Part shown: positions 3,300-63,660 of the stretch, piece by piece
Layout of the letters: every line of letters starts with the position of its first letter
Numbering within the stretch: the stretch's first letter is position 1
Assembly (NCBI GenBank): GCA_020184695.1
Contig: JAANOX010000278.1
Span: 62,001-126,000, forward strand
DNA from: Histomonas meleagridis 2922-C6/04-290x
Lineage: Eukaryota > Protista > Parabasalia
DNA length: 64,000 nt
Reading direction: 5' to 3'
Notes under the pieces: generated by a model
The model's input: the letters and a program-made list of their open reading frames with translations, nothing else
What the model was told of the DNA's origin: nothing
The model's database searches: none
Translations under genes and position numbers: made by a program

Positions 3300-3532
3300 A
3301 AAATTCGCATAAAAATTATACAATAGTTGGATTACTTCTTGAACAAAAAGGAATTGATGTTAATGCTAAAGATATTTAAATGTTTTATTTAAAAATTATT
3401 TGAATAATTTTATATTTCATCATAATATTCGGAAATTATTTAAAATATTTTGGTAACATAAAATTTTAAAATAATATTTGGGAATTATATTAATTATTTT
3501 ATACTGCACTTGATTATTGCAAATCTTGATGC
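3300..3532 (+). pseudogene. Isolated ankyrin-repeat relic carrying 17+3 modules
   Basis: LLLEQKGIDVNAKD, then 4 x 20-nt modules (3374-3453) decoding K-Y-G-W, a 9-nt junction, then 2 modules decoding G-Y followed by TALDYCKS*. Confidence 0.7.
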
Positions 3533-4012
3533 TGAAATAGTTGGTTTATTTAATAAATTAAATTAAATTAGGGGGTAAATAATGATCCCTCCCGTTTTCA
3601 CTCAATAAAACGAATTCGATTTTCATTTTGATTTATTTGGTAAAGTATTCCGTATTGTACTCAATGACCCTGTTAAATCGTATATATTTGATTTTGTGTT
3701 ACTTTAGCTTAAACTCTAAATGTTTTTAATTATATAGATTTAGTAATTTTATAAATAAATGACTTATTGAAGAAACTTTTAAATTCAATAAGGATGATAA
3801 AAACAATATTTAAGTAAAGAGTTGATAAGTTTAAAACTATTTCTATGGAAAAGCATTTTGCATTAGACAACATTTTTTTCTAAACGGCTCTTTTTAACGG
3901 TCTCTTTAAAATTGTCTTTTTGTCATAATTGTTTCCAGAGAAAATTTCTGGCATAGAAATTTAACGCAACAAAAATGGGAACAATTTGAATTTTCAATAT
4001 GGCTAACCGCAA

Positions 4013-6724
4013 ATGTCTAGTGCGAACACATCCATAATCGAATCGGAAGATATACATTCTCATAAAAAATCTACATGCTTGGAATTACTTACTGAACTTG
4101 AGAAAGTTATATTTAGTTTAACAAAAGAAAATTTAAATCTTACAGTTCAAAAAATAATAAAACTATTTGATACAAATTTTCCTTATACATTTAATACTAT
4201 TATATGTAATTTAGTATACAGTGCATTTTCATCACAAAGGAATTCATTTGATATTTACATAAATCTTTTATCAATGATTCAAACAAAAGAAGAAGAAATT
4301 AATCAGAACATAATCAAAATAATTTCAATTTTCATCAAGTGCATATCTAAAACTAAAACTCACGAAGCATATAATATAATATCACGACTTATTGAACAAA
4401 ATCTAATTGATGCAAATATCACCAAAAACATTAAATCGAAATATTTTGCACATTATAAAGAAGAATACAAAAAACAAACTAATGGATATGAATTTCATAG
4501 AATTTATCCATTTAAAAAACCCTTTGGAGATCCAATAGAAAGATACTTTATGGATCATTATGAAGAACTATCAAAGAATGATTGGGAACTTCATAAGAAA
4601 TATATTAAAGAGGGACATAATCCAAATGAAATTGCAAAAATAATTCGAAATGATGAAATCGAAAAACTTCAAGAAATATCATCACAAACAAAATTTAATA
4701 TTAATCAAACAATTGATCCATCACTTTATGAAATATGTTCATTTATTAACAAACCAAATGTTACATTAATTGATTATGCAGCATTTTTTGGAGCAATTCA
4801 ATGTTTTAAATATTTACTTATGAATGGTGCAAAATTAGAAAACACAGCTAAATATGCAGTTGCAGGTGGAAATCTTGAAATTATTCATTTGTGTGAACAA
4901 AATCATTCATCATTTGAAGATGCTTATGAAACAGCAATAGAATTTCATCGAAATGATATCTTTCATTATATTTATGAAAATAAATTAGAAAAAATTAATC
5001 ATGGAGAACCACATCCAATGCCAAATAATTTGATCTTTGGAAATGGAATGCAATTTAATAATAATAATAACAATTATGATAATGATATAAATATTTTAGT
5101 AAGATTTTGTATTCAGAAAGAAAATTATGAAATTCTTACATTTTTAGAAGGAAAAAAAATGAAAATTGATAATAATGTTATAAATGAATCAGCAAAATCT
5201 GGAAATTTATATCTTGTTAAATATTTTCAACAAAATTATCAACTTCCAAATAATGTTTTAGTTTTTGCTACCTATTCAGAAAATATTGAACTTATTAAAT
5301 ATATCTTAGAACATAAAGGATTTAATATCAATGCAAATACTATTCATTTTATTAATATTTGGTTTATTTTTTCCATTTATAATTAATTTTAATATTTTAA
5401 TATTTGTTTTATTAATATGGGATTTAAATTAATTATTTGAAATTGGTTTTATTGATTTGGAGTTTTTTCCAATAATTTTTTACATCACTTCTATTAGCAA
5501 TAAGAGATAATAATTTAGAAATAGTAAAATTACTTTTAGAACAAAGTGGAATTGATGTAAATGCAAAAACTATTTGTTTTGATTATATAGAAATTGCTTT
5601 AATTATTTGGCGTTTATTTAATAAATTTAGAAATTGATTCTTTAATTTAGAAATCGTTTTGAAATTTTGGAAATCATTTTTATAATTTGGAATTTAAATT
5701 ACAAATTTGAATTTTATTTCAATCATTTTTTACATCGCTTCAATTAGCAGTCCAAAACAATAATATAGAAATCGTGAAATTACTTTTGGCACATAAAGAT
5801 ATCGATGTAAATGCAAAAACTGTTTGTTTTAATAATTAAGTAATTGCTTTAATTTTTTGGGACTTATTTATATGATTTAGAAATTGATTTTTTAATTTAG
5901 CAATCGTTTTGAAATTTTGGAAATTATCTTTATAATTTGGAATTTAAATTACAAATTTGAATTTTATTTTAATGATTTTATAAATCAATTCATTTAGCAG
6001 TCCAAAACAATAATATAGAAATCGTGAAATTACTTTTGGCACATAAAGATATCGATGTAAATGCAACAACTATTTGTTTTAATAATATTTTATTTGTTTT
6101 AATATTTTGGTATTTCTTTTTATGATTTAGAAATTGTTTTAATATTTTGTTATTTGTTTTATTAAATTAAAGTTTACTATAAAAACTTGGAGTTTGTTTG
6201 CGTAATTCGAAATATGTTTTAATAATTGTATACAGCACTTCATATGGCAGTTGAGAATAACAATGTGGAAATTGTGAGATTACTTATAGAACATCAAGGT
6301 CTTGATATTAATGCAACGACTATATGTTTTAAAAATTTATAATTTATTTTAGGAATTTGGCTTTTATTTTGATAATTAGAAATTTATTTAAATGTTTTAA
6401 TGTTAAATTATAATCATTTCGTATTTATTTTAATAACATTTCACAGCACTTCAAATAGCTCAACAAAAAGGTTATAACGATATAATAAATTTACTTCGCG
6501 AAAAAGGTGCGAACAAGAATTCTAAGGAAGGACCTTCTTCCAATGAACTCAACTCTTTATTTTCAAGAAGAATTGAAAAAAATATTACAAATAATCGAAA
6601 TCAAACTGTTCTTCAAGTGAATAAAAAGGAAAACATTAAAAAAAAAGTTGAAATGAGCACTCAAACTCAAACATGTAAAAATCAAATTCACAAATCTTCA
6701 ATTTTTCAAATAAATTTATATTGA
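4013..6724 (+). CDS. DUF3447-type ankyrin-repeat protein, about 693 aa after removal of 37 spacers; the ORF track truncates it at 5386
   Basis: Continuous ORF 4013-5341 (LIDYAAFFGAIQCFKYLLMNGA, YAVAGGNLEIIHLC). Four 90-nt ankyrin segments (5482-5571, 5732-5821, 5982-6071, 6232-6321) and a terminal segment 6443-6724 (TGA) are separated by clusters of 17-nt spacer + codon modules. Confidence 0.85.
5342..6442 (+). repeat. Five clusters of 20-nt modules (17-nt spacer + 1 codon): 7, 8, 8, 8 and 6 modules
   Basis: Clusters 5342-5481 (140 nt), 5572-5731, 5822-5981 and 6072-6231 (160 nt each), and 6322-6442 (121 nt, one 21-nt module). Confidence 0.9.
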
Positions 6725-8126
6725 ACGCATTGGAGATGTAAATGTTGTCTCAAACCTAAATTGCATCACTCAAAGGTTTATCATTAAATCTTATATAATA
6801 AATCACAGTTGTAGAACATTTTTGTTCAATCATATCAATATTTTTTGGATAATTATAATCATCAAATAGATTATGTGTTGCGATTTTGTTGTATTAAATA
6901 TTAAATTCATTAAACATCTTCCAATCATTTGATGATGGTATTGGAGTTGCAGAAATGTGTTGAACATTGAGCTAATAAGCTTTACTCTTTGAAAATAACC
7001 AATGAAATTTCATCATTTATACATTTTATGGTTTGCTATTGTTTCGAAAAGTGAAAAATCTCCATAAGAAAGAAGCAACCCAAAATTTTAATAATTTTTT
7101 GTCTGTTCAGAGGGGGTGACAATCACATCAGACGATCAAAATTTATTCATTTATGCACGATAAAACGTCAAATATAACACAAAAAGTAAAGGATTGGAAT
7201 CTTACACCGAATATTTACGACTCAAAAATCTCGATTATCGCACAATAATTGAATGGTACCAAAATAAACTATTCATTTTTTCCGAATGAAGTTTTATTTT
7301 ACAACAACGAGTTCTCAAAAATTGTCAATGTGTTGCTGAATATGAGTTAAACACACAACGATCAAAACTGATTCGAAAAGTGGACGTCATACAAAAAGTG
7401 AAATTCACGATCAAAAACAAGTGTAAAAGTCGCTCGTTTGAATACTTTACATTGCAAAATCAAAAATTAATTTTTCTCGAAATTAGTACCTACGATTTTT
7501 ATTTAACTTTAGTATATTCATATAAATATATAATATATTAAGATATTATAATTAAAAAAATTCTACCGACTAAAATTGATAATATAGTAATTTGATAATT
7601 CAATATATATATGGTCAAAACTTTTGCTCGAATGAAGTGCCTTCTTCGAAAAAAAAATTCCGACTTCATCCGAAAGAAAATTTTTTCAATGAGCTCATCA
7701 AAAAATTGAATAGTTTATCGAATAGGGTTTCTTTCATCGTTTTCCTCTCAAATCCGATTGTCATCCCCTCTGTCTGTTCGAAATAATTTGAATGGCTCGT
7801 CTACTAAAAAAACGTTATATTCTGAAATTTAAATGTCACTTTTTAAGCCATGGCTACGTACAGGTCCTGTATTCGATTTATGAACAAAGACTCACAATTT
7901 ATTCCGATTTCATATTATGCACGTTGAGTTTTATTTTGAGGCTTGGTATCAAGCAGGTTTGTAGGTTATAGCTAGCCGTTTATTAACGGTCATCAAAGAA
8001 AACACGTAAAAGTGCCAGGAGATGGGCTTTCAAATTATTAACGTTCAAAGATCTCTACGGTTTTCACTTCACCTGGGGCGTTTTTTGTTGTGCGCGGCGC
8101 TTTTGTGCTGAGTGGTAGCTTAACTC

Positions 8127-9775
8127 ATGAAACAATAAAGGATCATAAATTTCAGAATGAATGGGAAGTGTTACTAGTGATCAAGAAGCTCGTTTTTGAT
8201 TTGAATGAAGAAAATATTACTCAATCAGCAAAATCGATAATTGACAAATTTGAAAAAAATCATACTATTTCATTATATTTAATTATTATCCATATGATAT
8301 ATACTTTATTTGTTCTAAGGAAAAAAGATTATGATATATATTTGAAATTTTTAAAAGAAATTATAATTTTAGAAGATGACCAAACAAAATTACCTCATGC
8401 ATTAATACGTTTCATTTCTCTTAAAAATACTCAAGAAAAAAATTATCTTATTTATAAATTACTTGAATATGGATTTATCCATCCAAAAATCACAAAAGAC
8501 AAATTTTCACTGAATCCATATTATATTCAATATGCATCAAAAGAAGAAATTGAAAACCCAATTATTTGGTATTTCATGAACCAAACAGAAAGAGAAAAAT
8601 TTGAAGAGAATTATGAAGAACTTTCAAAGAATGATTGGGAACTTCATAAGAAATTAATTGAAGAAGGAGTTAATCAGAATGAAATTGCAAAAATAATTCG
8701 AAATTATGAAATAGAAAAACTTCAAGAAATTTCATCACAAGAAAACTTTGATTTTAATCAAACAATTGAACCATCACTTTATGAAAGATGTTCTGTTATT
8801 AATAAAGAAAATGTTACATTAATTGATTATGCAGCATTTTTTTCTTCAGTTAAATGTTTTAAATATTTACTTATGAATGGTGCAGAAGTAGATAACACAG
8901 CCAAATATGCAGTTGCAGGTGGAAATTTAGAGATAATTCATTTGTGCCAACAAAATAATTCATCTTTTTATAAAGCATATGAAGCTGCAATTAAATTCCA
9001 TCGAAATGATATCTTTAAATATATTTATGAAAATAAACTCGAAATAATTAATGATTTTGAAGAATTGGGTATTGAATGTATTGTAAATCTTAATTATGAA
9101 ATATTTTCTTTTTTAGAAAAAGAAGGAATGAAAATTAGTGATTCGATTATTGATGAATCTGCAAATATTGGAAACATTTTACTTGTAAAATATTTTCTAA
9201 AAGAAAATTCATTACCAAATGATATTTGAGTTTGTGCATCGGTTTCAGGAAATTCTGAACTTGTTACATATATTTTAAAGCAAGAGGGGATTGAGATTAA
9301 TCAAAAAATTTATTTGTTTTTGTTAAAATTTATTATGATATTTTGATATTTCAAAATAATTTTTGGAAATTATTTAAATTATTTAAAACAGCACTTATGT
9401 TTGCATCTTTAAATGGTCATATAGAAATCGTTAAATTACTTCTTGAGCAAAAAGGAATTGATATTAATGCTAAAGATATTTATTTGTTTTATTTGAAATT
9501 TATTTTGATATTATAATATTTCAAAATAATATTTGGAAATTATTTAAATTATTTAAAACAGCACTTATTTTAGCATCTTCAAATGGTAATACAGAAATAG
9601 TTAAATTACTTATTGAACAAGAAGGAATTGATATTAATGCTAAAGATATTTATTTGTTTTATTTGAAATTTATTTTGATAATTTCATATTTCAAAATAAT
9701 ATTTGGAAATTATTTAAATTATTTGAAACAGCACTTACGAAAGCACATGAAAATGGTCATATTGAAAACGTTTAA
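8127..9775 (+). pseudogene. DUF3447-type ankyrin-repeat gene with three 4-module clusters, disrupted
   Basis: Paralogous to 4013. The ATG at 8127 is out of frame by one base, there is an in-frame TGA at 9227-9229, and TAA at 9773-9775 replaces an expected AAA. Clusters 9308-9387, 9478-9557 and 9648-9727 decode KDGK, ENGK and EHGE. Confidence 0.75.
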
Positions 9776-34371: not shown

Positions 34372-36957
34372 TTAGTTAATATCATTTCCTTTGTATTCAC
34401 GTAGTAATTTAACTATTTCTGTATAACCATTTGAAGATGCCCACATAAGTGCTGTTTGAAATAATTTAAATAATTTTCAAATATTATTTCAAAATATAAA
34501 ATTATTAAAATAAATTTTAAATAAAACAAATAAATATCTTTAGCATTAATATCAATTCCTTTTTGTTCAAGAAGTAATTTAACTATTTCTGTATGACCTT
34601 TTTCAGATGCTAAAATAAGTGCTGTATCAAATATTTTAAATAATTTCCAAATATTATTTTGAAATATGAAATTATTAAAATAAATTTTAAATAAAACAAA
34701 TAAATATCTTTAGCATTAATATCAATTCCTTCTTGTTCAAGAAGTAATTTAACTATTTCTGTATGACCTTTTTCAGATGCCCATATAAGTGCTGTATCAA
34801 ATATTTTAAATAATTTCCAAATATTATTTTGAAATATGAAATTATTAAAATAAATTTTAAATAAAACAAATAAATATCTTTAGCATTAATATCAATTCCT
34901 TCTTGTTCAAGAAGTAATTTAACTATTTCTGTATGACCATTTGAAGATGCACACATAAGTGCTGTTTGAAATAATTTAAATAATTTCCAATTATTATTTT
35001 GTAATATCAAATTATTAATATAAATTTTAAATAAAACAAATAAATATTTTTAGCATTAATATCAATTCCTTCTTGTTCAAGAAGTAATTTAACTATTTCT
35101 GTATGACCATATTGAGATGCTAAAATAAGTGCTGTTCTAAATAATTTAAATAATTTCCAAATTATTAAAATAAATTTTAAATAAAACAAATAAATATTTT
35201 TAGCATTAATATCAATTCCTTTTTGTTCAAGAAGTAATTTAACTATTTCTGTATAACCATTATAAGATGCAATCATAAGTGCTGTCCAAAATAATTTAAA
35301 TAATTTCCAATTATTATTTGGAAATATAAAATTATTAAAATAGACGCAATTTAAAGCAAATAAATATCTTTAGCATTAACATCAATTCCTTCTTGTTCAA
35401 GAAGTAATTTAACTATTTCTATATGACCATCTCTAGATGCCCAAATAAGTGCTGTATTAAATATTTTAAATAATTTCTAATTATTATTTTGAAATATTAT
35501 ATTATTAAAACAAATTTTAAATAAAACAAATAAATATCTTTAGCATTAATATCAATTCCTTCTTGTTCAAGAAGTAATTTAACTATTTCTGTATAACAAT
35601 TTCTAGATGCATTAATAAGTGCTGTACATAATAATTTAAATAATTTCCAAATAATATTTGGAAATATTAAATTATTAAAATAAATTTTAAACAAAACAAT
35701 TTAATATCTTTAGGATTTACATCAATTCCTTGTTTTAAAAAGTATTTAATTAATTGTTTATGATTAGACTTTGATGCCCATAAAAATGCTTTTTCAAAAA
35801 AATTAATGAAATTTTAAATAAATATTTATCACATAGAATTATGTAATTTAACATCATCATTCTCAATCTTAATTCCTTTTTGTTTGATGAGCCATTTCAC
35901 TACTATAGGATTTCCATATCCAAGAAATTGGGAAAAAAGTTCTTTTTTAATCATTTTTCCTTCATAAAATATATGTATAAATGGAAGATTATGCAAACTT
36001 AATGCACCAGCTTGGAGTGAAAGATTTAATTTTGATAAACCTTCTTTCTCTAAAAAGATAAAAATTTCATAATTAATGTGTTTTTAAGCATTGTATTCCT
36101 AATTCATTTAAATCTTTGTTAATGATTAAGTTTTTCTTTCTTCAAATTTTTTTGATTTCTTTCATCATAAAAAAAATAATAAAAACGTCATTTCGATGAA
36201 ATTGAATTGCTGTTTCTAATACATAGCTAATAGTCGAATTATTTTGTATGCATAAATGAATAATTTCTAAATTTCCGCCTGCAATCGCATATTTTAATGT
36301 ATTTTTAACATTTGATCCATTAATTAATAAAAACTTAAAACATTTAATTGACTTATAAAATGCACAAAAATCAATTAATGAAACATTTTTATGATTAACA
36401 AATGAATGTTTTTCATAAGATGATGGTTCAATTGTTTGATTGAAGTCAAATTTATTTTGAGTTGACATTTCTTGTAATTCTTCTAAATTATCATTTCGAA
36501 GAATCTCCAATATATGATTTTCTTTCTGATTTTCTTTGTCTGCTTTATTTATAATTTTTTTTAGATAATAAAAAAGATTTGAAGGTATCATTTTATGGTC
36601 GTTCATTTCGTTAAGAAGACATTCTGATTCACTTGTATTTTTTAGGTAAAGATAAATGGTTAATACCTTAAGTAGTTTTGAAAAACTTAAATTTTTTGTA
36701 TTTGATAACAAGTTTAAAAATGAAATGTATAATTTTGCATCTTTATTTTGGGTAAAATAAGCCATATAAATACACTGAGTAATATAAAATTCATAGAGTA
36801 AAGGACAACTTGGCTGAACTTCTAATACTTTTGAAACTTTCTGAGAAATTAATTCGAGATTATTTTCATTTAATTCTAAAAACAACTTTTCAATTGCAAG
36901 AGCTTCATCAGGAACGAGTTGCAAAACTGATGGACTTGGTGGAGGAGGAATGTCCAT
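34372..36957 (-). CDS. DUF3447-type ankyrin-repeat gene with nine module clusters (34 modules); 1-nt frameshifts at about 36080-36185
   Basis: ATG at 36957 (MDIPPP), DUF3447 motifs LIDFCAFYKSIKCFKFLL and YAIAGGNLEIIHLC, a 170-nt periodic ankyrin array, and TAA at 34372. Confidence 0.75.
34456..35852 (-). repeat. 170-nt tandem ankyrin array: 90-nt coding segment + 4 x (17-nt spacer + codon)
   Basis: Clusters 35793-35852 (3 modules), 35626-35705, 35456-35535, 35286-35365, 35136-35195 (3 modules), 34966-35045, 34796-34875, 34626-34705 and 34456-34535. Confidence 0.92.
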
Positions 36958-37199
36958 AAAAATTATAGAAACGATCATAAGTCACTCAATTTATCAAAAA
37001 GTGAATTCAAAGTGTTGCTGGAATGAGGAAGAAATTCATCCCAGTAAATATACTGATCTTAATGAATATAAACCAAATATGATTCGCTATACTGTTGTGT
37101 ATGTTGCGAAGTTCACAAAGCCTATGAGCAATTGGCATTTTCCGGACAGACTGGAATATCATAATATATAAATATATTATATTTATTTGATCTTCGAAA

Positions 37200-37271
37200 T
37201 CGCTGATAGTGTAATGGTTATCATGTAGGATTGTCGTTCCTGTGATCCGGGTTCGATTCCCGGTCAGCGAG
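37200..37271 (+). tRNA. tRNA-Asp (GTC)
   Basis: Acceptor stem TCGCTGA/TCAGCGA, D-loop AGTGTAATGGT, anticodon arm TAGGA-TTGTCGT-TCCTG and T-loop GGTTCGATTCC. Confidence 0.95.
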
Positions 37272-41687: not shown

Positions 41688-44681
41688 TCACAAGCCAAAC
41701 CTTTCGCAAAAGCTTTTGACTTTCTCCTTATCCGCAACAGTAATTACATTATAATGGATTCTCTTAATGTATTCCATTATATCTTTAATTGATGGTCTGT
41801 TTAATGGATTTTTATCTAAACACTTAATCAATAGATTTGTAAATTCGTCACTTAATTCGATAGTTTTCTTTAAATCTGGTATTATTCCATTTATTCTTTC
41901 GAATGGATAACTTAACTTATTTATATCACCAAATGGATCCTTTCCATCCAACAAAAACAAAACTGTTAGAGCGAAGGAATAAACATCTGTAGCCTTTGTT
42001 AAATTTGCATTTGAAAATTGTTCTGGCGAAAAATATAACGGATCACCGTAGTCGTAAACCATTGAAACCTGTGAAAGTACAAGTTCAAAGTGTTTGTTTA
42101 CTAAAATTGACGATGGGCAAATATTACAGTGTAAAATGTCATTTTTATGTAAGCATTCAATTGCTGACGCTAAAGAAACAATTGAAATGCTTTTCATCGT
42201 CGAATTGAACATGTTTGCGAATTTTTCATTTGACACAACTTCGCGAATATTACCATATCTATAAAAAGGATAAACAACAGATTTTTCATTATATGTAATA
42301 ATCGGCACTAAAAATGGATGTTTTATGTTGGTATATTTTGTTAAAACAGAATTATTAATTGGTATTTCAAACGTTTTCATCAAAAATTTGTTTTTAATTT
42401 CAGGGAAAGAAACTAGTTGTGAAATGCTTAAGTTAGAATAACCCAAATTCTTTTCAACTTTAACATTATCTAATTCTATATGCTGAATGTTCTTTTCATG
42501 AATATTTCGTACATCATAATCAATGATAAAGCGTTTGTTACGTTCGTTCATCCATAAAATTGTAGGTTTAATATAAAGTGAATTAACAATAAAATTAGAT
42601 TCTTCACTTTGTGTAACAAAACCACTTGGAGGCATTTCGGAGATACACTCATTCAAAGTGGCTTTACCTTGGTCATTTAATTCTATGATATAATGTTCAG
42701 TAATACCAAATCGTGATTGCGATATCGTAATTTCGCCTTGTTGAGAACAACAAATCACTGATTTAGATGCATTTCTGAAGTCACATTGTATCATGTTAAC
42801 TACACTTTTATCCTCAACCTCAATTACATTTTTCGAAAATAGTTCAAATTTACAATTATCGAAAAACACATTTGAATCTTTCATTACACGGAAACCTGAA
42901 AGGCTTCTATTCGAGTAACATTCAATAAATTTCACATTAGAATTTCGAATAATTATTGGTAATGTAAAATTACAACCTTGAATTTCGGCAACTGAATTTT
43001 CGAATGAAATTGCTGTTTCAAGTGGACCACTAAAGTTAACGTTACAATTATATAAGAAAGTTTTAGCCTTTGATTTGATGTAAAATCCGATGTCACTTTT
43101 GTTGATTGTAAAGTTATGAAAAATTCCACTTGATCGGTCTTCTAATATAACCGCTCCTTGATGTCTATCGGCTATACAATTTGACACGCGAATTTGTGAT
43201 GTTCCTGAGCCAACAATTCCGTGTTTATTATCACAAAAGTATGCGTGATCAATGTTACCGAATGATTGGCCACCAAGCATTATTGATGAGTCATTTGGAT
43301 TTCGATTAAATAATGTTCCAATTAAATATATTTTTGATTGATCATTTACTATGATTGATTGATTTCGTGCATTTTCGAATATCGAAAATTTGTCATGATA
43401 TTGTGATTGTTGATTGAGTGCAATGTTATATTGTTGATATGAAAAGTTACAAGAAAATGTATATAATTGACTGTTTTGAGATAACGTAATTCCGCATGTT
43501 TCATTGTTCTTAAATGTGCTATTTCGTACGTATAATATGATATTTGCTTCGGCATCTCCACCAAATGATTGATTTTCAGTTATCGTACAATTATCAATAT
43601 AAATGTTATTTTTGGCTTCGCTTTTAGTGGTTAAAACAAAGCCATTTCTGCCATTGTTTCGAATGGTTGTGTTAGTTAAAAATGAATAATTGCAATCTTC
43701 GATTTGAATGCCATTCGAACCTGACTCATTGAATGTACAATTTAGCAACGCGCTTTTTTGTACACGCCTTAAGACTATTCCGACCAATTTATTTTTATAA
43801 AATTCGCAATTTCGAAAAATTAATTTTTCACCTCCAACACAAAAAGCGCCAATTTCATTGTTATTATTAAACTTACAATTCTCAAAAATGCCTTCAATTC
43901 CTTCAAAGAATAAACCGCAATTTTGGCAATCTGATAAATCACAATTAATTAAAAGCAGCATAGATTTTGGTTTGGTTATAATGCCTTTTTGAATTGTGCC
44001 AGAAAATGTTGTGTTTTTGATGAGACCACGTGCTTCATTTTGGAAAAGAATTGATCCATTTGAAATGAGACAATCATGAATTGTGGTAACTGTGTTATCT
44101 AATAAAACAAGAAGAGGATCTCTGCTTTCAGTTGAGGTATGTGTGAGCTCACATTTGTTAAGATACAAATGTCCTTTTGAAGATACTTTGATTAATAACG
44201 TTTGTACACCAGTAAATTTACAATTGTTGCAGCAAATTATAGCTGATGGCGAACTTTCAATACAGCATGTTTGTCTTGTAGTAAAAGTACAATTATCAAA
44301 TTGAATGAAACCTGCAAGAGCTATTACACAAAAGCCTTTACTATCCTCACCATCAACGCGAAAATCAATTCCTTCAAAACTTACATAATTTGTAAGAATT
44401 TCAACGATATCATCTTCTGTTTGTGAAATTGTTACTTTACCATTAGCTTGAAAGAATAAAGGTCTTGATATGTTAAGATGTTCATTATATGTTCCGCTGT
44501 TAATAAGAATTGTATCTCCAGCATTTGAATTTGAAATTGCATCATTTATTGTATTATAATGTGATGATGGTCCAACTTCGAGTGTTTTGTTTTTAATTGG
44601 TTTATTAGCTTGTTGGATCACAAAAGAGCTTTCATTTAATGTGTCTGATAAAGAAAGTATTTCTTCAAGATTGCTATTCAT
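41688..44681 (-). CDS. Parallel beta-helix (pectin-lyase-like) repeat protein with a C-terminal degenerate protein kinase domain
   Basis: AISNSNAGDTILINSGTYNE followed by many NCxF/G repeats. Kinase C-lobe ILHCNICPSSILV, YFSPE, DVYSFA, CLDKNPLNRPS. First ATG at 44681. Confidence 0.8.
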   Translation of the reverse strand: MNSNLEEILSLSDTLNESSFVIQQANKPIKNKTLEVGPSSHYNTINDAISNSNAGDTILINSGTYNEHLNISRPLFFQANGKVTISQTEDDIVEILTNYVSFEGIDFRVDGEDSKGFCVIALAGFIQFDNCTFTTRQTCCIESSPSAIICCNNCKFTGVQTLLIKVSSKGHLYLNKCELTHTSTESRDPLLVLLDNTVTTIHDCLISNGSILFQNEARGLIKNTTFSGTIQKGIITKPKSMLLLINCDLSDCQNCGLFFEGIEGIFENCKFNNNNEIGAFCVGGEKLIFRNCEFYKNKLVGIVLRRVQKSALLNCTFNESGSNGIQIEDCNYSFLTNTTIRNNGRNGFVLTTKSEAKNNIYIDNCTITENQSFGGDAEANIILYVRNSTFKNNETCGITLSQNSQLYTFSCNFSYQQYNIALNQQSQYHDKFSIFENARNQSIIVNDQSKIYLIGTLFNRNPNDSSIMLGGQSFGNIDHAYFCDNKHGIVGSGTSQIRVSNCIADRHQGAVILEDRSSGIFHNFTINKSDIGFYIKSKAKTFLYNCNVNFSGPLETAISFENSVAEIQGCNFTLPIIIRNSNVKFIECYSNRSLSGFRVMKDSNVFFDNCKFELFSKNVIEVEDKSVVNMIQCDFRNASKSVICCSQQGEITISQSRFGITEHYIIELNDQGKATLNECISEMPPSGFVTQSEESNFIVNSLYIKPTILWMNERNKRFIIDYDVRNIHEKNIQHIELDNVKVEKNLGYSNLSISQLVSFPEIKNKFLMKTFEIPINNSVLTKYTNIKHPFLVPIITYNEKSVVYPFYRYGNIREVVSNEKFANMFNSTMKSISIVSLASAIECLHKNDILHCNICPSSILVNKHFELVLSQVSMVYDYGDPLYFSPEQFSNANLTKATDVYSFALTVLFLLDGKDPFGDINKLSYPFERINGIIPDLKKTIELSDEFTNLLIKCLDKNPLNRPSIKDIMEYIKRIHYNVITVADKEKVKSFCERFGL

Positions 44682-44737
44682 TTCATAATGTAAACTATTC
44701 AAATCGTGAATATTTACCAAAAAAAAAGTCAGTTTAC

Positions 44738-63329: not shown

Positions 63330-63660
63330 TTAATTAAAATTCAATTATAATCTTAAAATATTGTGTTAACAAAATAAATATTATATAAAACAAATAGCCA
63401 TTTTTTACATCAATATTAATTCCTTTTAGTTCAAGAAGTAACATCGCTTTTCATTGTGTTTATAATTAGATGAACAAATAAGTTATTAATTATTAAAAGA
63501 AAAATTCAAATGTCGTCTTGAAACATTATATAGTAAAAAAATATCAAACAAAACAAATAAAAATCATATCCGTTTTGTTCAAGAAGTAATTTAACTATTT
63601 CTAAATTTCCTTATTTTGCAGTACATATAAATGCTGTAAGAAATATTTTAATCACCTGTA
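63330..63660 (-). pseudogene. Highly degraded ankyrin relic with spacer-like sequence
   Basis: LTAFICTAK*GNLEIVKLLLEQNG followed by TTTTATTTGTTTTGTTT, a variant of spacer 1; the module phase then decays. Confidence 0.45.

Follow-up and report, generated by a model that had tools for sequence, protein, structure and literature searches.

How an ordinary repeat protein could be made from a gene in which the codons of the repeat loops lie one by one between short AT-rich sequences is the question raised by an ankyrin gene of the parabasalid Histomonas meleagridis 2922-C6/04-290x (GenBank assembly GCA_020184695.1). The window analysed here comprises 64,000 nucleotides (nt) of contig JAANOX010000278.1 (positions 62,001 to 126,000 of the forward strand), and coordinates given without a locus name refer to it. 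The gene in question is located on the minus strand (36978-34372), with its ATG at 36978 and its TAA stop at 34374-34372, and codes for a DUF3447 domain followed by ankyrin repeats. Between its 10 long exons are found 34 elements with a length of 17 nt (17-mers) and 25 exons consisting of a single codon each, and the decoded product of about 674 amino acids (aa) contains DUF3447 and 10 ankyrin repeats. According to the explanation put forward here, this is one expressed gene in which 34 intervening 17-nt sequences separate the codons of the beta-hairpin loops; each of them would be cut individually from the pre-mRNA, the 25 three-base exons would be kept, and the mature message would code for ordinary ...AKD-x-x-G-x-TAL... 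repeats. That the RNA is processed in this way, by whatever machinery, is very probable, and the locus is a clean and very regular example of the interrupted ankyrin layout.

Layout of the interrupted gene

The repeats form a tandem array with a period of 170 nt on the minus strand. Eight exons starting with ACAGCACTT (T-A-L) were placed by script at 35625, 35455, 35285, 35135, 34965, 34795, 34625 and 34455, of which the first seven are 90 nt long each (93 nt with the attached loop codon) and have the 3' end ...AATGCTAAA(G/A)AT, and the eighth is the shorter terminal one with 81 nt up to the TAA. Seven of the intervals between these exons are exactly 80 nt long and one is exactly 60 nt long, and a further 60-nt block (35852-35793) is found between ...GIKIENDD, which ends at 35853, and KAFLWAS.... 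Every block divides into AT-rich elements of 17 nt with one triplet after each, the final triplet of a block being contiguous with the next exon. Excision of the 34 elements in silico yields an open frame of 900 nt without any stop, followed by the TAA at 34374-34372. The single parts are as follows.

35853-36978, minus: exon 1, N-terminal region with DUF3447, ending ...GIKIENDD
35796-35852, minus: block 0, 17-mers at 35852-35836, 35832-35816 and 35812-35796
35835-35833 and 35815-35813, minus: single codons TAT and AAA of block 0; the third codon, GAA, is fused to exon 2
35706-35795, minus: exon 2 (90 nt), E-KAFLWASKSNHKQLIKYFLKQGIDVNPKD, first regular ankyrin repeat
35629-35705, minus: block 1, four 17-mers (starts 35705, 35685, 35665, 35645), loop KNGC; AAA, AAT and GGA are single-codon exons, TGT is fused to exon 3
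35536-35628, minus: exon 3 (93 nt), C-TALINASRNCYTEIVKLLLEQEGIDINAKD
35459-35535, minus: block 2, four 17-mers, loop KNRN, third triplet AGA
35366-35458, minus: exon 4 (93 nt), N-TALIWASRDGHIEIVKLLLEQEGIDVNAKD
35289-35365, minus: block 3, four 17-mers, loop CYGW
35196-35288, minus: exon 5 (93 nt), W-TALMIASYNGYTEIVKLLLEQKGIDINAKN
35139-35195, minus: block 4, three 17-mers (classes 1, 2 and 4, without the class-3 module), loop KGR
35046-35138, minus: exon 6 (93 nt), R-TALILASQYGHTEIVKLLLEQEGIDINAKN
34969-35045, minus: block 5, four 17-mers, loop KDGQ
34876-34968, minus: exon 7 (93 nt), Q-TALMCASSNGHTEIVKLLLEQEGIDINAKD
34799-34875, minus: block 6, four 17-mers, loop KHGD
34706-34798, minus: exon 8 (93 nt), D-TALIWASEKGHTEIVKLLLEQEGIDINAKD
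34629-34705, minus: block 7, four 17-mers, loop KHGD
34536-34628, minus: exon 9 (93 nt), D-TALILASEKGHTEIVKLLLEQKGIDINAKD
34459-34535, minus: block 8, four 17-mers, loop KYEQ, third triplet GAA
34372-34458, minus: exon 10 (84 nt followed by the stop codon TAA), Q-TALMWASSNGYTEIVKLLREYKGNDIN*

The Ank profile of Pfam (PF00023) scores 62.9 bits on the exons against a cut-off of 21.1, with profile positions 3-32 aligned, and the profile positions that are missing from the exons are exactly the loop. A period of 33-34 residues with a four-residue x-x-G-x loop before T-A/P-L becomes apparent only once the 17-mers are removed. At the 5' end, an open reading frame (ORF) of 278 aa (36978-36145) matches DUF3447 (PF11929) with 33.9 bits (cut-off 26.9, E 3e-8). 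The same domain is also found N-terminally in the other two ankyrin genes of the window, and we take it to be typical of trichomonad ankyrin proteins.

In the copy of exon 1 present in the window, this ORF runs into a stop at 36142, and a further frameshift follows near 36081. Comparison with contigs of DNA and RNA runs revealed six homopolymer length differences (36051, 36060, 36081, 36130, 36147 and 36179), and when the lengths of the contigs are applied, 36978-35853 becomes one frame of 374 codons without a stop, as compared to ten stops in the version of the window. Because the read-supported lengths open the frame, the assembly probably carries homopolymer errors; the six differences are thus probably residual long-read assembly error and not the mark of a dead gene.

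Coding behaviour of the triplets

With a loop profile based on 232 uninterrupted 12-nt ankyrin loops, 82% of which have Gly at position 3, all 20 possible registers were scored on 17 unique 80-nt blocks from the window and from relatives. Register 17 reaches -13.0 bits per loop in comparison to -17.6 for the best of the 19 others, and it places Gly third in 12 of the 17 loops (0-1 in the other registers) with no stops. When the three interrupted genes of the window are taken together, none of 77 triplets is a stop at register 17, the highest number being reached at register 16 (37/77). The G + C content of these 77 triplets is 0.33 at register 17 and 0.01-0.31 elsewhere, not exceeding 0.20 except in the overlapping register 16. 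Pairwise differences among the repeats of the gene amount to 0.357 in the triplet columns and to 0.09 in the 17-mer columns, with register 17 being the maximum of all 20, and within the exons it is the surface codons after TAL and AS that form the variable columns. In comparison with the relatives, identity is 0.58 for the triplets and higher for both the 17-mers (0.80) and the synonymous third positions (0.83).

The length of the loops points in the same direction. In 79 uninterrupted ankyrin loci from metagenomes, the distance between the end of a repeat and the T-A/P-L that follows is 12 nt in most cases, with 15 nt found occasionally. The same distance in the interrupted family is 80, 63 or 60 nt, which equals 12 + 4x17, 12 + 3x17 and 9 + 3x17, respectively.

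The first-pass annotation of this DNA, made from the letters alone, had proposed that each 20-nt module contributes one codon, that 17 nt are skipped, and that normal D-x-x-G-x-T-A-L repeats result. This proposal is strongly supported by the existence of a single register, the lack of stops, the variable triplets beside conserved fillers and the normal loop length of 12 nt. Also the strings it had decoded (Y-K-E, KNGC, KNRN, CYGW, KGR, KDGQ, KHGD twice, and KYEQ) are exactly reproduced by the 17 + 3 cut, and Gly is indeed the third residue in five of the seven four-module blocks, with AGA and GAA in the other two.

Two further ways of dividing the blocks were tried and rejected. A single GT...AG intron per block (gttttat...atacag) leads to the wrong reading frame, and a single 68-nt intron with 12 contiguous bases kept at either end yields loops without Gly at all splits (for instance IYLF or KIFD).

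Evidence from RNA

Among the sequencing runs, X4 and X6 were taken as RNA and X1 as DNA. The exons are common to a very large family, and much of the RNA evidence therefore applies at the level of the family. The 15 best-supported joints listed all lead from an exon 3' end to a TAL exon start; they are present in X4 and X6 and have depth 0 in X1, for which the joint counts are incomplete. Between the two sides of these joints 11-14 letters are found in most of the rows listed (6-14 overall), as opposed to 60-80 in the DNA, and together with the matched flanks these letters decode to NEGE, IYGD, ENGH and KGGR. Loose ends of RNA contigs at exon borders decode to KDGE-TALMIA, KDGN-TALMNA and YDGN. 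The loops decoded from RNA are thus of the form x-x-G-x and 12 nt long, and a loose DNA end at a comparable site runs into the spacer (...tattt AGA).

With respect to sequencing depth, the ratio of RNA to DNA in 13 bins of the array is inversely correlated with the 17-mer fraction (Spearman -0.84 in X4, p = 3e-4, and -0.87 in X6, p = 1e-4). It is 0.02-0.08 in the bins with the highest spacer content (0.60-0.67 17-mer) and 0.6-0.7 in exon-rich bins; in the bin covering block 1 (35614-35714) it drops to 0.022 (X4) and 0.005 (X6), compared with 0.72 and 0.27, respectively, in the adjoining exon bin. In a word search over 35616-35865, run X6 was found to hold 0.26 of the sampled words, equal to the share that is located wholly inside the 90-nt exon (60/220). 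The RNA runs have almost no depth over the intergenic flanks, where the depth of the DNA run is normal, and carry-over of DNA in the RNA runs is therefore small.

At the locus itself, RNA contigs cover 35853-36805 of exon 1, and contigs anchored at the locus depart from the genome at 35853/35852 and 35706/35705. One contig of 199 nt matches 36045-35853 and continues with six non-genomic letters from 35852, the start of the first element; another of 157 nt matches 35795-35705 with no mismatches and then has 66 unmatched letters from the element border onwards. A DNA contig is colinear across 35746-35855. Furthermore, a joint 35136->35195 over block 4, by which 58 nt are skipped, occurs in four contigs of X4 and five of X6 and in none of X1 (joint counts again incomplete). 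A loose RNA end at 35045, next to block 5, reads ...AKN-KDGE-TALMIA and belongs to a near paralog, and an RNA-only joint connects 34628 (GAT and exon 9) to an exon 3' end, the exon ends being identical and the landing ambiguous. A protein search for RNA-derived products ending ...ENDDYK (query window 35853-36050) gave no matches.

As the outcome that would speak against its reading, the first-pass annotation had named abundant mRNA retaining the spacers; such mRNA was not seen, as is evident from the depth ratios given above. With regard to the "17+3 code" of which it spoke, the triplets do decode, and the RNA supports removal of the elements for the gene family as a whole and in part for the locus itself; as a code it is a description only. 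We infer that the pre-mRNA of this copy loses all of its elements, each of them separately.

Paralogs and relatives

A protein search with the read-through ORF matched only read-through ORFs of metagenome DNA and no spliced forms. A representative search was dominated by giant ankyrin proteins and gave no information. The interrupted layout together with the four classes of 17-mers is found in five metagenome loci from four samples, termed L001, L002, L003, L083 and L084 (ENA assemblies ERZ24773472, ERZ28614798, ERZ25039391 and ERZ28614790). L001 and L002 represent one gene in two samples and have in common a variant of the first element with 18 nt (L001 705-722, L002 396-413), which is not a sequencing error because it is identical in two independent assemblies. 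In L083 the blocks measure 80 and 81 nt. In L003 the first 17-mer is precisely absent and its codon is fused to the exon (GAT AAT / 17 / GAA ...), which, as judged from the sequence, has the look to be expected if one element had been lost precisely at these borders.

A search with the 5' ORF further revealed a paralog in H. meleagridis with 41% identity, labelled 'caskin' at NCBI (L085; assembly GCA_020186115.1, WSYJ01000186.1:1659870-1669066, feature at L085 4001-6770). The public model of 398 aa ends ...FDINVIIS, i.e., it reads into the first 17-mer, and about 1.5 kb of interrupted ankyrin repeats downstream of it lack annotation. This downstream region comprises nine further blocks, with the loops EYGN, DSKV, KYGV, HFGN, EDGN, QSGQ, VLGL and DEGL plus one unclear. 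Its 17-mers have drifted in sequence, and all are 17 nt long except one of 18 nt (about 5996-6013). Two H. meleagridis strain assemblies are identical over 9,197 nt at this locus. In this comparison, the conserved property of the elements is their length and not their sequence. The layout of this locus and the DUF3447 domain are also in line with a parabasalid source of the window. Exact look-ups of five proteins of the window returned no record; indirect support for H. meleagridis comes from the paralog, from a G + C content of 24-34% (28% published) and from the dates of the runs (2013, 2021 and 2023), which agree with the published data sets. All members of the family that were examined are interrupted, namely the three genes of the window, L085 and the contigs of the four metagenome samples.

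Sequence of the elements and possible ways of removal

The elements are inserted in phase 0, are AU-rich and follow the consensus A-U-U-U-N9-A-U-U-U. Across a pool of 85 unique elements, A is present at position 1 in 89% (G in 9%) and at position 14 likewise in 89%, and T is present at positions 3-4 in 96-98% and at positions 15-17 in 86-89% (position 17 in 89%). Four position-specific classes of 17-mers are common to paralogs and relatives. All 34 elements of the gene are 17 nt long and therewith below the 23-nt minimum of parabasalid introns.

With respect to the enzyme, we infer a lineage-specific and strongly diverged use of the spliceosome, which would remove one element after another. 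The reason for this guess is that a fixed minimal length combined with AU-richness characterises the smallest spliceosomal introns, for example in Stentor; in addition, the short introns of Trichomonas are T-rich (PMC12316389), and tunicates show that GT/AG can be given up by spliceosomes (PMC13326754). Such a spliceosome would select the elements by their fixed length of 17 nt, a purine-U-U-U start and an A at position 14 followed by UUU. Removal by a diverged spliceosome is a tentative suggestion that deserves serious consideration but falls short of being probable.

A number of observations weigh against this account as a whole. As to the spliceosome, only 3 of the 34 elements start with GT, 31 start with A and none ends with AG, whereas U2-type introns have GT and AG at their ends; no element contains the CTAA of an ACTAAC/TCTAAC branch motif (0/34); the conserved A is three bases from the 3' end and thus closer to it than any known branch site; and the exons between adjacent elements are only 3 nt long. 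The pooled 17-mer profile holds only 8.9 bits, and the score reached by 90% of the true elements is also reached at 191 of the 32,469 positions in ordinary ORFs of the window. The motif ATTT-N9-ATTT was rejected as a sufficient signal, since it occurs 6 times in ordinary ORFs with 7.2 expected and is therefore not avoided there. As to the RNA, the run types ('RNA?', 'DNA?') are guesses, and some joints in X1 were left uncounted. None of the RNA contigs listed spans a complete block of this gene with the gene's own loop letters, the RNA loops that are visible derive from paralogs, and the residual depth ratio over the spacers is 2-8% and not zero.

The consensus of U12-type introns is /ATATCCTT at the 5' site and TCCTTAAC at the branch site. 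These U12-type signals were absent from the elements, which start with ATTT or AATT and none of which contains ATATCC or CCTTAA. Paired ends as in euglenid introns are likewise absent, the fold of the 17-block alignment having -0.56 kcal/mol with one helix of five base pairs away from the element ends. The same fold provided no conserved structure that would correspond to a bulge-helix-bulge (BHB) helix, although weak AU pairings may be missed by this method. Ends, sequence and fold together therefore do not explain the choice of the right 17 nt, and the element sequence alone cannot specify removal. A higher constraint on the 17-mers than on neutral sites was also considered but is not apparent (identity of 0.80 versus 0.83 at synonymous third positions).

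Alternatively, the 17-mers might be removed from the RNA by a non-spliceosomal machinery, either by an RNA ligase together with an endonuclease that cuts beside U-tracts at a measured distance, or under the direction of a guide RNA. In favour of this possibility, all tested spliceosomal signatures fail, the elements occur in the window only in ankyrin repeats, their four position-specific classes are common to paralogs and relatives, and the nonconventional introns of euglenids provide a precedent (PMC6221363, PMC12501133). However, an endonuclease of the tRNA/BHB type is not in line with the lack of a conserved fold, and sequence-specific guides do not fit the elements of L085, which have drifted and yet kept their length. 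In addition, no candidate enzyme or guide was seen, and a whole new machinery is a priori less probable than a spliceosome that has been modified (PMC13326754). A non-spliceosomal route is possible but doubtful, being nearly as likely as a diverged spliceosome, and a spliceosome-independent excision that measures out exactly 17 nt of RNA at a time is rather unlikely.

Explanations without separate excision of the 17-mers from RNA

All the explanations discussed in this section, i.e., silent copies, whole-block introns, hopping, elimination from the DNA and artefacts, are improbable even when taken together. Among them, it could be argued that the interrupted copies are dead or silent and that the RNA loops originate from uninterrupted paralogs elsewhere. 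No visible RNA loop string equals the decoded loops of this gene, the window has frame breaks in 36051-36179, and degenerate relics exist at 3320-3540 and 63340-63640, all of which would be in accordance with this assumption. However, the frame breaks are contradicted by the homopolymers of both DNA and RNA contigs, and stop-free, codon-like triplets would not last in dead DNA. Moreover, it is precisely at the element borders that the RNA contigs with an anchor in unique exon sequence break, the DNA run X1 (with incomplete counts) yielded no joined forms, and every member of the family examined is interrupted. It is thus very unlikely that the copies are silent.

A second group of explanations assumes that the whole block of 60 or 80 nt is either removed as one intron or retained and hopped over by ribosomes. 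The blocks are short, and hopping is known from gene 60 of phage T4 (over 50 nt) and from mitochondrial bypass elements. Yet the RNA contigs keep 11-14 letters between the repeats, and neither 0 nor 60-80, and the spacers are depleted 10- to 30-fold from RNA, although in a bypass the insert is retained in the message. A whole-block intron would also leave without explanation that the triplets fit the ankyrin loop profile in one register only, and the resulting loop-less repeat would miss positions 33, 1 and 2 of the Pfam Ank profile. Both variants are highly improbable.

Finally, although very short AT-rich eliminated sequences exist in ciliates, the assumptions that the 17-mers are eliminated from the DNA in some cells or nuclei in a ciliate-like manner or are assembly artefacts can practically be disregarded, as contigs of short DNA reads run colinearly through the elements, X1 has a depth of 0 for the joined forms (counts incomplete), and the layout is present in both of the H. 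meleagridis assemblies with 9,197 nt of identical sequence as well as in four metagenome assemblies with more than one contig naming style (NODE_..._cov, k87_, scaffold_).

Comparison with known intervening sequences

The spliceosomal introns of Stentor coeruleus have 15-16 nt and about 75% A+U (PMC9505925), and introns of 18 nt are known from Bigelowiella natans (cited in PMC12316389). The 17-mers resemble those of Stentor in their near-invariant minimal length, their AU-richness and the presence of a conserved A shortly before the 3' end. In contrast to Stentor, none of the 34 elements ends with AG and 31 of 34 start with A, the A is only 3 nt from the end, and the elements are arranged in tandem with 3-nt exons. 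Within the same phylum, the type B introns of Trichomonas vaginalis are 23-25 nt long, T-rich and bounded by GT...AG, with a (T)CTAA branch motif (PMC12316389), and known parabasalid introns in general are GT-AG introns with a branch motif and at least 23 nt (PMC12316389). Like the type B introns, the 17-mers have a fixed and very small length and are rich in T. However, Trichomonas has at most one or two introns per gene, while here 34 elements are found in one gene, lack GT...AG and branch motifs, and are 6 nt shorter than the parabasalid minimum.

Other intervening sequences with unusual ends differ in further respects. The nonconventional introns of euglenids are nuclear, lack GT-AG ends and seem to be removed without the spliceosome (PMC6221363, PMC12501133); in Euglena their ends need to pair with each other (CAG...CTG with fixed spacers), and their length is greater and varies, as opposed to the 17-mers, which are fixed in length, contain hardly any G or C and have ends that do not pair. 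Tunicate spliceosomes process introns without GT/AG genome-wide (PMC13326754), but these are of ordinary length and are not placed around single codons. Also micro-exons of 3 nt are included by splicing in animals and plants (PMC8042270, PMC8831610), where they are isolated between long canonical introns, in contrast to the runs of two or three single codons, 17 nt apart, described here. Taken one by one, none of the tested features that define U2-type, U12-type and euglenid introns, eliminated DNA or translational bypass was found in the 17-mers.

According to the published genome paper, introns are scarce in H. meleagridis, with no more than one per gene, and ankyrin genes are not mentioned there. 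A literature search for 17-nt introns, single-codon exons, and introns or ankyrin genes in Histomonas returned no description of this layout. The 17-mers thus apparently represent a class of intervening sequences that has so far not been described.

If the RNA evidence holds, no intervening sequences shorter than the 17-mers would be known in parabasalids (the previous minimum being 23 nt), and the 17-mers would rank among the shortest anywhere and be the only ones of these without GT-AG ends; in addition, the runs of single-codon exons would be the first of their kind. It is puzzling that sequences with less than 9 bits, no fold and no canonical ends should nevertheless be removed, as it appears, with base-exact precision. 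This would imply either a mode of spliceosome action that has been thought impossible or a new excision activity.

For the evolution of the protein family, the modular structure might be of importance. Because one duplicated or lost 17 + 3 module corresponds to a change of one codon, gain or loss of a 20-nt module would alter the message by exactly one codon without a frameshift, and the binding loops of a large ankyrin family could grow, shrink and diversify residue by residue. Natural variants are exact in this respect, with block 4 lacking one whole 20-nt module, and the number of modules per loop ranges from three in this block to 7-8 in the gene designated gene 1 below. Since the published model of the paralog L085 stops inside the first element, other members of the ankyrin family may also be mis-annotated as truncated, which would bear on proteomics and virulence studies that use the published annotation.

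Other loci in the window

Within the window, the interrupted layout is confined to ankyrin repeats and is found, in addition to the gene described above, in two further genes (gene 1 and gene 3) and two relics. In gene 1 (ATG at 4013, blocks in 5342-6442, plus strand) the blocks are 140, 160, 160, 160 and 121 nt long, corresponding to 7, 8, 8, 8 and 6 modules, and decode without stops to the loops LINGEGF, RGRRGGEF, SGRSGGEY, FGRVKGEY and IGENSF. These loops are rich in Arg and Gly and twice as long as normal ankyrin loops, which looks like a tandem duplication of the 20-nt module. Gene 3 (ORF 8090-9229, blocks in 9308-9727, plus strand) has three 80-nt blocks with the loops KDGK, ENGK and EHGE. 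Its N-terminal ORF is cut off from the first regular repeat by an in-frame TGA (9227-9229), which could be an error, the mark of a pseudogene or something else. Degenerate intergenic ankyrin fragments with spacer modules are located at 3320-3540 (plus strand) and 63340-63640 (minus strand) and represent relics of the interrupted family.

Besides a tRNA gene at 37200-37271 (plus strand, 60 bits), which is situated on the opposite strand, about 220 nt upstream of where the interrupted gene starts, no match was found in an Rfam scan of the window. An ORF of 1010 aa at 41691-44720 (minus strand) codes for right-handed beta-helix repeats and a C-terminal protein kinase domain.

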